Part shown: positions 40,701-52,700 of the stretch, piece after piece
How the letters are laid out: the number at the start of each line of letters is the position of its first letter
How positions within the stretch are numbered: position 1 is the first letter of the stretch
Source of the DNA: Styela clava
Taxonomy: Eukaryota
Length of the DNA stretch: 64,000 bases
Assembly (NCBI RefSeq): GCF_964204865.1
Contig: NC_135250.1
Location: 20,770,001-20,834,000 of the forward strand
Direction of reading: 5' to 3'
Translations under genes and position numbers: made by a program
Notes under the pieces: generated by a model
The model's database searches: none
Told to the model about the DNA's origin: nothing
Seen by the model: only the letters and a program-made list of their open reading frames with translations

Positions 40701-43700
40701 TCTAAATCCTAATACCGCCAGAAAGATAAAAAAAAAATCAACAATTACACATTGATTAATATAGCTCATTGAGGGAGATCTTCATAGATTTGGGAATGAA
40801 CCATTTTGTGACCCATTGTATATAAGAATGATACATCATGTTCATTGAACTTCCATATTTTATGATTTTAAACTTACGCTGTGAAAGAGGCGGTGTCTAT
40901 TATTTCTTCTGCCTTTAAATTTTCAGTCGATATTTTAGCTTGCTGAATTAATTTTGCTTTCCATCGTAAGTAGTCAACCAGAGAAGCTGAGATAATCTTA
41001 ATAAAAAATTTCAACTTTTAATTAAATTTGAAACACATTATCATTATTTAACTTTGAAAAATTTAAAGAGTAAAATAGAATTAACATAACTACCATTTTC
41101 GCGAATTAATGTGTAAACACACAAATACAAATACTGATTTTTGAAAGTTGATTTTTAATTGATAATAAATCATAATTTTTACAATATTTCTATTCTTATT
41201 CACTTTCCGCAGAAACCTTTCTGAGTTGCAATAGGTGAAAGAAATATTCTGAACAATTTCATGTACTTTATCATTAATTACTCCAAATAATGCTAGTACC
41301 ATGTAATTTTGCGTCGGAATAGCGCATTTGATGACAACCAACAACATGTTATAATGGGGAAATTATTATAACAAATAAATATATGATTTAACGAAAAATT
41401 CTTGTCAGATTTCGAATAATTTGATATGCATACACAATATAACATGGTAACACGATCATGAGACACCAAGCCGCATTTTTTAACCTGATTTTTATTGTGC
41501 TGCAAGCATATATATAATGCATACACTATGTAGCACAATTAACAGATAAACAACTTGAAGATAAATATGTCACAACTAACCTGGGATCTTCGTATGTCTG
41601 GTGGACGCTGATTGGTTGGTTTTTGTCTCAATTTCACTCCAACATCATCACCTGCAGATTGTTCGATTCCCGGAGAATTAGCATCATCTGTCATGAATTT
41701 AATGGAAAAATTGAAGGTATATACTCAATTAAAATTAACAAATGAATTCAAACTATTTGAAATGTACGGTCTTTTATTTACAATAAAATAAATCATATAT
41801 CTATATATTTCTTCAATTTGATATTATAATCTCAATCCGCTTAATTTTAGGTATATAGAATATAGTTGAACGGTCAAATTACCGATTATTTTTTGATTAT
41901 TCTCTGACTGACTTTCATAGGAAAGTTTCTCGCTTATCTTACCATAACTGCACCAATTCATCTCTCTGTATTTTAATAAACATCTGATGAGCATATCTCG
42001 ATAGGGTACCAAACTTGAAACTGTTTTTGTATTTCAATTTTTCAGTTTGAAATTTGCAAAGAATAAAAAACAAAATAAAAACATGGACAAGGCCTACACT
42101 AGCGACATAAGTTTTGAATATTTTACTGCCGAATCAGAATGTTCCGATTCGAATAGTTTCGAATCTGATTCTATCTAGTATAATTTCATATCGACTTTGA
42201 ATCATATTGAAATTTGAAAACACTTCGAATGGATGTATCAACTACCTAATATATTACGACTGAGAAAATTTACATGGATGTGCACTCAATTTTATATTTA
42301 CTTTTCACATAAATTTATATTCGGAAACAGTACAGGATGTACAATGATGTTTCTTCTAATATTGACCTTTAAAAATTTACTCAATGATATTCGTTAATTA
42401 AATGTTGGTACCGTTTGCGCCATGGTTTTAAAAGAAGCAATGATTACGATGAAAATATCACAGACCTACGTTTTCAAAATAAGAAATATTGCAATAATAT
42501 TTTATTATAATGATAATATATAGGCGCTTAAAAAAACATTTATAAAATTTATATGAAAATATATTTGTAAAATTTGTTAATAGTTGTTATAAAGTTGCGA
42601 CCCATATGAAATATAACAACCATCAGGGTGCAACGACTTGGAAAGCTGTAATAAACGCTCGATGTCGAGACAATGCCGCTGCGCCGTGCAATGTCGCCTC
42701 CTGTTAACTAAATAATTTGTTTTTTAAATGGAATCAAATCTTTTTCAAATTGGTTCGAATCGATTCGACTTGATTCGAATCACTCAGATTCGAACTTGGG
42801 AAACACGCGTCCCCGCGTACAACACAGGCGAGAAAAGAATCGTTTATACTCATTTGTTTTAATTATATCTTACTACACACTCAAAAAAAAGAGCAAATCG
42901 ACTTGAATGACGTACAAACCTATTCTTTTTAAACCATTGAGGGGAAATTTACAATAACATATAGTTTTTAGCTCGATCTTAAGTCGCACACCAACTAGGA
43001 AAAGTTGTGAACACAACCTGTGTGTTTATTTGAAATCGAGGTTACGTCATCACGCACTCGTGATAAATTAAATTCTACTATGTTGAAATCGGGGAAAATC
43101 ATCTGCGAATCACACTTGATCATTTGACGGTAGTTCTTTGTCTATGTATCAAGCGAACAGCTGCAAAATTAAAAAGTGTTCCTATTGTATACTGTAATCA
43201 CCTCCGAGAAAAAGTGCTCACTACAATATTTCTAAAAACAATATATTCTGCAGACATGTTCATCAATGTGGTAATTTTTCTTCATTTATTCAAATTAAAA
43301 AAACAACAACACTTTATTATATTTATTTAATAGGGAAACGGTAAGATTCAAAGGGAACACTGGATATAAACAGATGCGTAAAAATTAAATGAAACGATAT
43401 GAAAGCAACTATGAAAAATAGTTAATCAAAATGGAAACATATAAGCTTAAACTTGAAACAGCTTGCACCACTTCTGTATAGCTTTAAAAACACTCATGAT
43501 GAGTCACTAGTTGTCTCTGGAGAAATGAGGCGGACGTCTCCTGTGAGATTGGTAGTCATATGATCCCTGCTCCAACAATAAATATTACGTCATTACATCT
43601 ATGACGTCATTTCCCCATTAATTCTCTAGTCCGCTGCGCCTTCTTCCTGTCTGGACTTGCATTGTCGCCATTCTTTTTTGCGCCAGTTTGGAAACGGTTT

Positions 43701-49700: not shown

Positions 49701-52700
49701 GTGCATCTGATTACTGACTATTTTGATTCTTCTTTGCACGTTATTTTCACTACAATAACTCAGCACTCTCTCACGCTTTCTGGTAACGCTTGATTTCCCC
49801 AATTATCGAAGAATTTCTGTGCATTAATTAACTCAACCAATGCAGCAATAACGCATTATTGGTAAATTGTTTTTGATTTCGGCTAACTTGACGGTGCAAG
49901 CAGTTCAAGCAAAGCAGAGAGCTGATCCGTATACTCCAGGTGAAGGTAGCTTGCAGTTTCACGTTAAGGATTATGTTTTTATCGCGAGATTTTTACAATA
50001 GATGACTCCGACTTCGTAGTCGATGTGACAAAATCAGGCATCACAAATGCTAATCCCATATCACTCTGGTCACACAGGAAAAGTTCTGACTAACGCAAAG
50101 TCACGATTCTGCGCTGATTGTGAATTGAATTGAAACAAAAGCCTGGTTTCGTTCAGTCTTTTAGCGATGCGAGGAAACAGAAGTTGGTACCAGTAGATCA
50201 GTCGTGACAACAACCAGATAAATTGTTTATGCTGTTCCCTATAAACTTTCGATAGAAGTAGTCACTTATTTAATTTAGAACTGTTTAGTATTGTCTGATC
50301 TTAATCCCGAAGAAAACTAGATAATTTTTCATTTAAACATAAAGTACACAAATACGGTAACACTTGAACCATATGCGGTGAAAACTAGGTTGAAAAACAT
50401 ATGGTTCGTTAATTAAATTTAGCAGGTAATCGAACTAGGCACTACAATGCTCTCACGAAAAATTATTTTTGATCAAGCATGACTACTGAATTCTTTAATA
50501 ACTGATGACGTACTGTGAAAATAATTGTTGTAACTGTGAGTGTTCTACCTGTACTATCAAATATGGCTGGGCATTTTTGAAGACCTGATGATTTCAGAAT
50601 CGAATCGAATATTATTTCCGAATTAAATCGAATTTCGAATACTTGGAAGATATATGAATTATTACAACGACGTAATTGTATGTGATGTTTTCTATTGTAA
50701 TGAGTCCCTTAGACAAATAAATTACAGGAAATAGAATCTATCATTCAGTCAGTTCGCTCAGATGTTTCACCGAATAAGAAATACTTTTTATCAATAACTC
50801 GACTAGGAAGAACAGGCTCTTATGTAGGGATTGCAATTTAAAAATACAAGAGGTGCTAGTCTGGGCATGTTTCAGACACGCCACAGAGAAAAACAGCTAT
50901 CGAAACGTCCCGACGGGTGATGGCTTCACAAAAAATTTGAAGAATTCACCATGACATTTTGCGGACAAGAATAAAACGAGACGGCGACGATTCGAATCTG
51001 AACCGAATCGAATAATTTACTACTCGATTCAAAATGCCCAGCCCTATTATCTACAGGGTGAGAAACAATCATTGCCTTTTCCGTAGGCAATTCTAAGCTT
51101 TATGGAATAATTTCACGTGCAATTACTAGTATATATATTGCTATAATATAACAGGTATCTCACATTATTTCTATTGTGCGATCAAACATTGTATATGGCG
51201 TAAACTGAGAAATACAGAAAAAATCTGATAGAAATAAAAAACTACCTGAGGGAATTAGTTGCTTTATTGTTATGGTTGCTGATGTCTTTGATTCTCCTAA
51301 TGTATTTTCAGCAACACATGTGTAAACTGCTTTCTGATATTTCAAGTTGTCGTGTATAATCCCGCTTTCTTCTTTTTTACCTAATGGTAGACCGTCTTTG
51401 AACCACGTTATTATGGGTGCCGGAAATCCGGTAACAGAAATGTTGAGTACGACGTTTTCGTCCGAAGTGACTTCCATGTTCTAGAAAGTAAAAGAATTTT
51501 TTAGTATTGGAAATGTAAATTCGTGATTTTGTGTCTCGAAAGAAATATGGGTATTTACGAAATAATATATTTCATTCAAAATTTGCTTTTTTCGTTAACT
51601 TGCATACATCATTATTTATACAACCATTTACATGCCTTTTACTCCAGAAAAGTTTTTGTACAAGGATTCCCTGATCTGAGACGATCTACTGCTATATTCT
51701 TGAGGGGGCCGACATCTTTCCCGTTTGCAATTGTCAACCCAAATTTTTACAATCTGGTTATAAGGTGGCAGAATTTTAACTTGTGATGCCACTATATTCA
51801 AGTCCAAGGCTTTAGCGACTTGTGCAGCGGAATGGCACATGGTGGCGCAACACACAATATCAGCCAGCATACGAGCTCAGTTTGGGGTGAAATTTGAAAA
51901 GAAAAAAAAATTTAATATCATTCCATCTACTTCTTCCGTCTTTAAGTACTGAAAATTTAAAATCAGGTAATTGGGTAAATTGAAATATGGTATCAGCTGC
52001 TTCAGTGAAAAGTCAACTGGGGGTTGATGACGAATGAAAGGCTGACTAAGACTAGTAGTTTATCATCAATCAACTACAATTCCACTTACTTCAAGAGGAA
52101 TCACAAATTCTGGCGCATGAGGCTTAACTTCATTTTCATCATTTGCCGTCATATCGATCGGGTGCATTGGAAAATTTCTTCTGTCGTGCTGCATTTCATT
52201 GGTACTCATGTAACTGGAAGATTCATTGCTTGCAATTGTTTGCGTTATTTCTTCGGGACAAAGAGTATCTTGGTCAACGACATGTTGACTTTTTTGACTT
52301 GAAGGTCCTGATAAATTATACCATGAATTAATATATCTTAAAGAACTCCGTTGTAGTTATGTTGGTGACCGTACATTTGAACCCACGTACATTTGAACCC
52401 ATGTGTATATCCGCGGGTTCAATCTATATGCGGGTGCTAAAACCATGGGTTAGGGTTAGTATGGGTTAAAATATCCGTAAAACAAAAAAAATTCCCATAG
52501 GTGCAATTGTCATGGGTTCAAATGTACATGGGTTCAAATGTAATGGAACCGTTATGTTAGCACCGCGCTCTTGATGTGTAAATGGTTGTTTAAACCCAGG
52601 TCATAACATCATCAGGCTGAGCAAGATAAAAATTAGTTTCTATATCGTATACTTTTTAGCATACTTTTATAACAAACCGAATGAACCGTTACTTTATTGA

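Follow-up and report, generated by a model that had tools for sequence, protein, structure and literature searches.

A putative short myosin light chain kinase gene within an intron of a predicted SPEG/obscurin-type kinase gene on the same strand in Styela clava

The nested gene and the host messenger

The DNA analyzed here is a 64,000-nt stretch of the genome of the tunicate Styela clava (contig 1, positions 20,770,001 to 20,834,000), referred to below as the window. It is A+T-rich, with a G+C fraction of 0.28 to 0.38, and all features of the finding lie on its minus strand. Two genes are of interest, one inside the other: a compact gene of eight exons (45921-43607), whose product is predicted to be a short myosin light chain kinase (MLCK), and a larger host gene that encodes Ig domains and, farther downstream, a kinase predicted to be of the SPEG/obscurin type. 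A preliminary description, made from the sequence alone, had placed a complete MLCK gene inside an intron of the larger gene in the same orientation. When the exon borders and reading frames were read again and compared with RNA joins, all of the coordinates and phases given in that description proved correct, an agreement far above chance.

Thirteen public runs from one organism, belonging to four studies and none of them recorded as RNA, were considered, and contigs from four of these runs (X1, X5, X6, and X7, from three studies) were placed on window positions 41500 to 47499. Such contigs demonstrate presence only, and rare variants get dropped from them. Read on the minus strand, all of the listed contig joints are GT..AG (CT..AC in plus-strand letters). 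Lengths and phases were obtained by exon-wise arithmetic, and every search was run exon by exon.

The nested MLCK gene has an unbroken reading frame of 1,059 nt (353 codons) in which all internal borders are AG/GT, and spliced contigs reproduce its introns in all four runs (Table 1). A first exon of its own, as had been proposed, is confirmed by the join 45906>45824, which is present in every one of the four; the join 43805/43726, where a repeat is skipped, is visible only as adjacent record coordinates. The 3' end had been expected near 43300, and MLCK contigs do terminate at 43273 in X6 and 43274 in X5, 12 to 13 nt below the AATAAA at 43290-85, while the MLCK pieces of X7 stop at 43378. The gene is thereby represented by a separate, fully spliced messenger of about 1.45 to 1.5 kb.

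The host messenger passes over the whole of this unit. In two of the four runs, from two studies (X1 and X5), position 51246 of an Ig exon (Pfam I-set, E 1.4e-11) is joined directly to 41687, and the message continues from 40996 onward. The join to 51246 is observed as a loose end of the contigs that lie on exon 41687-41581: these contigs carry 255 and 238 loose letters at 41690 and 80 at 41577. Of the 30 displayed letters of the upstream loose end, 29 match the plus strand from 51249, three more letters being common to both sides of the join, and a 25-letter core has a single site in the window, at 51254-51278. All 30 displayed letters of the downstream loose end map uniquely to 40963-40992. 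The order in the host messenger is therefore the Ig exon, then 41687-41581, then 40996 onward, and the 9,558-nt stretch that bears the MLCK gene is an intron. We regard the nesting of the MLCK gene in this host intron as very likely. RNA connects only these three host segments; the other parts of the host gene are assigned by strand, order, and homology.

Several smaller observations concern the two messengers. Both contigs with the host join disagree with the window at position 51252, the change on the gene strand being C to T and altering Pro to Ser in the Ig exon; this is probably an allele. One X1 contig is unspliced over 41661-42184 and so passes both the 41687 acceptor and an in-frame ATG at 41694. 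The contig may come from RNA that retained the intron, the simplest account since X1 contains much unspliced RNA, or else from a minor start inside the host gene. A low-depth X5 contig departs from the window at 42226, and its 30 displayed loose letters match nowhere in the window. On the MLCK side, the X1 contig extends to 42506, about 770 nt beyond the usual poly(A) site, and the additional stretch (43272-42506) is either a longer 3' untranslated region (UTR), read-through, or host intron RNA. X1 also holds one odd variant join, 45149>45238, with GGG between the two sides. Finally, an out-of-frame ATG at 45926 overlaps the MLCK start (ATGAAATGG) and would give a peptide of 13 codons that ends in exon 2.

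Table 1. Features of the nested gene, the host gene, and related loci (window positions unless a contig is named)
Feature	Position	Strand	Basis and remarks
Host Ig (I-set) exon	51480-51246 (235 nt)	minus	AG before, GT after; one leftover base gives a phase-1 donor; joined to 41687 in X1 and X5
Host intron enclosing the whole MLCK gene	51245-41688 (9,558 nt)	minus	Bounded by the RNA-supported join 51246>41687
Host exon, low-complexity linker	41687-41581 (107 nt)	minus	AG before; phase 1 in, phase 0 out; open only with one carried-in base
Next host exon	40996-40878	minus	Start RNA-supported, AG at 40998-40997; end inferred from GT
MLCK upstream transcribed stretch	46367-46013	minus	X1 contig, spliced downstream, unbroken 45906-46367; contains TATAAA
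MLCK exon 1 including 5' UTR	46012-45906	minus	Begins at the trans-splice acceptor, AG 46014-46013
MLCK exon 1, coding part	45921-45906	minus	Start codon at 45921 (MANCN)
MLCK exon 2	45824-45746	minus	AG before; requires one upstream base (phase 1)
MLCK exon 3	45667-45464	minus	AG/GT borders
MLCK exon 4	45379-45238	minus	AG/GT borders
MLCK exon 5	45152-44950	minus	AG/GT borders
MLCK exon 6	44193-44041	minus	AG/GT borders
MLCK exon 7	43949-43805	minus	AG/GT borders
MLCK exon 8	43726-43607	minus	TGA stop at 43609-43607
MLCK 3' UTR	43606-43273	minus	AATAAA at 43318-13 and 43290-85
Upstream Ig exon, probably host	63745-63374	minus	tblastn, 29 matches, best E 3e-11; homology only
Putative host Ig directly before kinase	34598-34137, two exon pieces	minus	tblastn to shark SPEG 1583-1695, E 1e-10; borders by homology only
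Putative host kinase exons	~33737-33513, 32782-32558, 32109-31849, 31371-31129	minus	Borders approximate
Putative host kinase-1 tail exon	30703-30464	minus	Borders approximate; aligns with SPEG and obscurin kinase-1 tails
Ig exon after host kinase	21744-21559	minus	tblastn; homology only
Fn3 exon after host kinase	20184-20005	minus	tblastn; matches the Fn3 preceding kinase 2 in obscurin P0067, E 2e-7
Weak Ig exon matches to obscurin	contig 1, ~20,886,000-20,928,000 (158-116 kb in window-like coordinates)	minus	Homology
Canonical long MYLK (Ig domains, Fn3, kinase, telokin-like Ig)	contig 1, ~20,934,000-20,963,300 (193-164 kb in window-like coordinates)	minus	Colinear with all 1,807 residues of P0140
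Probable spliced-leader RNA gene array	contig 8, ~4.13-4.56 Mb (4464000-4470000 read)	minus	1,634-bp units

Identity of the two kinases

The nested gene matches the Pfam Pkinase family on exons 3, 4, and 5 (E 2.4e-11, 4.9e-8, and 2.6e-18, respectively), with no Pfam match on exons 6 to 8, and its exon translations contain the catalytic motifs GSGRFG, AAK, HLDLKPEN, DFG, and APE intact. For both of the exons searched against solved structures the best relative is MYLK4 (2x4f), at 79.8 bits versus 73.6 for DAPK3 and at 44.6 bits versus 41.0 for twitchin. To place the kinase among its relatives, reference kinase domains were cut from named proteins and the per-exon scores were summed. The sums are highest for long MYLK (316, P0140) and for insect proteins named 'titin' or 'titin homolog' that carry a C-terminal MLCK-like kinase (292 to 309), and they are lower for the first kinases of SPEG, obscurin, and Unc-89 (173 to 216, SPEG kinase 1 giving 216) and for second kinases (124 to 162). 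On these scores the nested kinase appears closest to MLCKs rather than to DAPK, titin, or obscurin kinases, by modest margins.

Behind the catalytic domain, the tail beginning RRKWA resembles by eye the calmodulin-binding segment RRKWQKTGNAVRALGRL of P0140, the last exon alone giving only 17 bits. The product is predicted to consist of a catalytic domain and a calmodulin-binding-like tail. This predicted layout is that of vertebrate short MLCKs (MYLK2, MYLK3, and MYLK4), in which a catalytic domain is followed by a tail of the RRKW...AVRAI type with neither Ig nor Fn3 domains; the nested gene differs from them in having only 353 codons and almost no N-terminal extension. The nested gene reads as a second, short MLCK paralogue, because the same strand also carries, some 100 kb upstream of the window, a canonical long MYLK gene that has nine or ten Ig domains. 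Comparison of MLCK exon 5 with the genome yielded four matches at E <= 1e-8, one of them 74% identical, about 121 kb upstream, and on the same strand.

The host kinase was described in advance as SPEG-like, and its surroundings agree with this better than its catalytic core does. Pkinase is found on all three pieces searched, one of them below the curated cut-off, and the summed per-exon scores are 224 for SPEG kinase 1, 200 to 219 for MYLK-type kinases, and 86 to 106 for second kinases; the best solved relative is DAPK1. Judged from such scores, the host catalytic core alone does not decide the kinase type. The tail behind RRKWQ aligns with obscurin residues 6412-6500 (E 8.6e-7) and with SPEG residues 1978-2044 (E 0.083). 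The Ig ahead of the kinase corresponds to the one that precedes SPEG kinase 1, and the Ig and Fn3 behind it to those found ahead of obscurin kinase 2. Because of this kinase-1 tail, the Ig domain before the kinase, and the Ig-Fn3 pair after it, we assign the host kinase by homology to the SPEG/obscurin kinase-1 type. The resemblance to SPEG and obscurin (Unc-89) would thus extend over the Ig exons, the Ig before the kinase, the tail RRKWQ-QRSL...RSI..LL, and the following Ig and Fn3.

What the SPEG-like description does not find here is a second kinase. Second-kinase queries from eight two-kinase proteins match nothing past the Fn3 exon in the window, and 12 full proteins match nothing in the 50 kb downstream of it. 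When shark SPEG kinase 2 was compared with the whole genome, the 126 matches were nearly all generic intron-less kinases; none lies between 50 kb below and 140 kb above the window, and the nearest on contig 1, at 21.38 and 21.40 Mb, lie over 500 kb off. The host differs from SPEG and obscurin in this respect, and in a core that scores nearly as well against MYLK-type kinases. It is therefore best described as a gene that appears to be related to SPEG and obscurin and to work like them, yet without their defining tandem-kinase feature. Separately, a weak kinase-2-like N-lobe match was noted on contig 16 at 6,068,392.

A different assignment, in which the nested kinase would be the 'kinase 1' of the host and the host kinase its 'kinase 2', was considered and rejected: both kinases score better against first kinases than against second ones, and the host kinase has a kinase-1 tail.

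Shark SPEG residues 1583-2050 gave 1,783 matches in a 90% library; among the 120 listed, vertebrate SPEG predominates, and a few arthropod obscurins and unnamed entries make up the rest. The 12-residue words of the Ig exon occur in none of the 150 multi-Ig giants listed (the best 150 of 4,035 matches in a representative library), the natural 106-residue open frame around that exon matched no candidate gene model in a library search, and six peptides from this locus are absent from all 275 proteins collected.

The 5' end of the MLCK messenger

The preliminary description had given the MLCK unit a TATA box of its own as its start. The MLCK contig of X5 points to a different origin of the 5' end. 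It matches the window up to 46014 and then continues with 10 foreign letters, which together with the AG at 46014-46013 make up, on the gene strand, a 12-letter string that is non-genomic at this place. Followed by GT, the same 12-letter string occurs 152 times in the genome (28 forward and 124 reverse), compared with four occurrences of a reversed control. Most of the copies are arranged in tandem on contig 8, repeating every 1,634 bp. The candidate leader is about 23 to 24 nt long and ends in TTAAG; it is conserved in all ten copies read, which have 22 to 23 letters before the GT in common, one copy with a single-letter difference. Three of the array units contain GTAAGT, and these also show a hairpin, a AAUUUAUGG stretch, and a TATA-like box some 30 nt upstream, whereas a fourth copy there has a different downstream sequence; a Sm-like site in the array units was judged by eye only. 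From these features the contig 8 array is probably a spliced-leader RNA gene. Given a non-genomic leader and a multicopy gene in which the leader precedes GT, we take the 5' end of the MLCK mRNA to arise, in one run at least, by trans-splicing at 46012, which lies 91 nt ahead of the ATG at 45921.

Additional copies of the leader with GT are dispersed on contig 1 (at 7120, 14.85 Mb, 20.65 Mb, and 23.88 Mb); they have two other kinds of flank and include pairs about 6.5 to 7 kb apart.

The proposed TATA box is weakened as a start site by its position. The TATAAA at 46044-46039 lies only 25 to 31 nt above the acceptor AG to which the X5 leader is joined, and a transcript initiated from this box would have no room for the acceptor. 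Furthermore, the X1 contig, which is spliced downstream, runs unbroken through this region to 46367, and the X1 bins as far as 47499 all show RNA at lower depth. The start of the MLCK mRNA is thus unlikely to be marked by the TATA box at 46044. With a contig reaching 46367 and a TATA box too near the acceptor, the trans-spliced precursor would start farther upstream, from a promoter in the intron or from that of the host.

These features have close parallels in Ciona, for which the literature describes about half of genes as trans-spliced (PMC1488885) and outrons of about 460 nt (PMC3074122, PMC11155486), that of troponin I measuring 459 nt (PMC3074122). As in such genes, the MLCK leader is attached to an AG within the 5' UTR, 91 nt ahead of the ATG, with at least 355 nt transcribed upstream. 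The end of the candidate Styela leader, the longer of the two, looks similar to the Ciona leader ATTCTATTTGAATAAG listed in PMC1488885 (Table 1). No paper naming both Styela clava and a spliced leader was found.

Interpretation of the locus

Taken as a whole, the evidence is best explained by a same-strand nested pair, in which a short calmodulin-type MLCK gene lies wholly inside a 9.6-kb intron of an Ig-rich kinase gene of the SPEG/obscurin type, and we consider this reading likely. The host messenger has the entire MLCK unit removed as an intron, by splicing of 51246 to 41687 and then to 40996. The MLCK messenger receives the spliced leader at the acceptor 46014-46013|46012, in one run at least, and has its own poly(A) end near 43273. 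Its pre-mRNA would start at a promoter of its own that lies upstream of 46367 but still within the host intron, which would place the TATA box at 46044 in the discarded outron. Transcription of MLCK from its own promoter in the host intron is the part of this scheme that we favor with some reserve. If it holds, the two kinases would be made independently and not by a choice of splice sites.

Several points weigh against this reading or temper it. The four runs were classed as 'RNA?' by guess, and it is the spliced contigs that identify them as RNA; contigs carry no information on starts, strand, or level. The leader was seen in one run of four, over 12 letters only; a search of the putative spliced-leader RNA array against Rfam gave no matches, and its predicted fold is only mildly better than that of shuffled sequences (z-score -1.83). 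Host intron RNA, rather than an outron, could also account for the X1 contig that reaches 46367, since X1 has depth in 29 of 30 bins and hence much unspliced RNA. Likewise, the lack of a host exon contig in X6 and X7, considered next, may merely reflect low abundance.

Both products could instead arise from one transcription unit, the MLCK mRNA being cut out of the host pre-mRNA by leader addition at 46012 and poly(A) addition at 43273. This would end the host transcript, while prior removal of the intron would lead to the host kinase. Such a scheme fits an MLCK 5' end that arises by trans-splicing and X1 RNA that is continuous above the acceptor to at least 46367, with lower depth up to 47499. 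In Ciona, moreover, the literature reports that trans-splicing is possible at an acceptor with an upstream donor when that donor is weak (PMC11155486) and that the leader serves to resolve the downstream genes of operons (PMC11155486, PMC1488885). Yet, according to PMC1488885, acceptors with an upstream partner donor favor cis-splicing, and Ciona operons have no spacers or very short ones, as against the 5.2 kb present here. A cis-splice from 51246 to 46012 would leave four codons before a stop, and no such join is seen in the contigs. Finally, MLCK mRNA is present in X6 and X7 although neither run has a contig in bin 41500-41699, the bin of the host exon, which fits separate control of the two genes. 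A single unit is therefore unlikely in our estimate. A more specific version, in which the intron acts as a processing switch and one host transcript yields either MLCK through leader and poly(A) addition, aborting the host, or the SPEG-type kinase through prior removal of the intron, is more doubtful still. If true, trans- versus cis-splicing would decide which kinase a muscle cell makes, which would be a new way of choosing between two enzymes.

The preliminary description had itself proposed a kinase-swap locus, with the donor at 51246 spliced either to 45824, giving a long Ig-containing MLCK, or to 41687, giving the SPEG-type kinase, and with a short MLCK made from an internal start. The phases do permit the hybrid, as had been stated: the 51246 donor and the 45824 acceptor are both phase 1, and the junction reads G|AC (Asp) with no stop. 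Two of the three predicted messengers, the short MLCK and the 51246>41687 host message, exist. Long Ig-bearing and short forms are also known from single loci in the cases of MYLK/telokin, obscurin, and SPEG; for SPEG and obscurin, PMC7957886 describes a tandem kinase layout and smaller kinase isoforms. The third product was not seen: no contig in the four runs has the join 51246>45824, no loose end is listed at 45824, and every contig that reaches 45824 comes from 45906, in all four runs. Nor does any contig of these runs join MLCK exons to 41687 or the two kinases to each other. An Ig-MLCK hybrid is also not needed here, as a true long MYLK exists about 100 kb upstream. The kinase swap is unproven and in our view improbable; since contigs show presence only, a minor hybrid may nevertheless occur.

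The locus might also consist of two or three plain tandem genes: the upstream Ig exons would belong to another gene, and the downstream kinase would use the ATG at 41694 and a promoter of its own in the interval from 43.3 to 41.7 kb. That ATG opens the same frame as the 41687 exon, and the unspliced X1 contig over 41661-42184 covers it. As the only form this arrangement is refuted by the joining of 51246 to 41687 across 9.6 kb, with GT..AG borders, in two runs from two studies; the X1 contig is most simply intron retention, and an additional internal start could be a minor form. We consider tandem genes highly improbable. An assembly artefact, whether chimeric contigs or a misassembled window, is scarcely credible, for although the evidence consists of contigs instead of reads and includes the odd X1 join, identical canonical joins appear in as many as four runs from three studies, both loose ends map uniquely in the expected order and strand, and DNA-like runs contain 0.82 to 0.93 of the sampled words of the window.

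On the reading as a nested pair, the locus combines known kinds of arrangement, for nested genes, trans-spliced genes, and multi-product muscle kinase loci have all been described. Like other nested intronic protein-coding genes, the MLCK gene is complete, has its own mature ends within one host intron, and is spliced across by its host. It differs in lying on the same strand, in being a paralogue of the host kinase, in having a second exon that is phase-compatible with the host donor, and in a 5' end made by a leader. Opposite-strand nesting is the commoner case of nested genes. The Drosophila Stretchin-Mlck, MYLK/telokin, and obscurin-kinase loci are similar in that they are muscle Ig/kinase loci with long and short products in one orientation. 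The products of those multi-promoter loci share exons, whereas here no shared exon is seen in the contigs of the four runs. We found no paper on this locus in the literature on trans-splicing, nested genes, and Ciona or in that on SPEG, obscurin, MLCK, and tunicates.

The nested pair would be an RNA-backed case in which guest and host are paralogous muscle kinases on one strand, in the closest invertebrate relatives of vertebrates. For annotation, the two kinases should be kept unmerged, and a trans-spliced gene should not be given a TATA box as its start. The analysis also locates a probable array of spliced-leader RNA genes in Styela clava.

The surroundings of the window extend the picture. 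Weak Ig exon matches to obscurin lie between the window and the long MYLK gene, and by homology these exons are probably the 5' part of the host gene. Three MLCK-superfamily kinases lie on one strand within about 175 kb, and the nested pair with the long MYLK upstream looks like an old local cluster of paralogues of this superfamily. In vertebrates, the MYLK, SPEG, and obscurin loci are separate, and the three-kinase cluster may bear on their origin.

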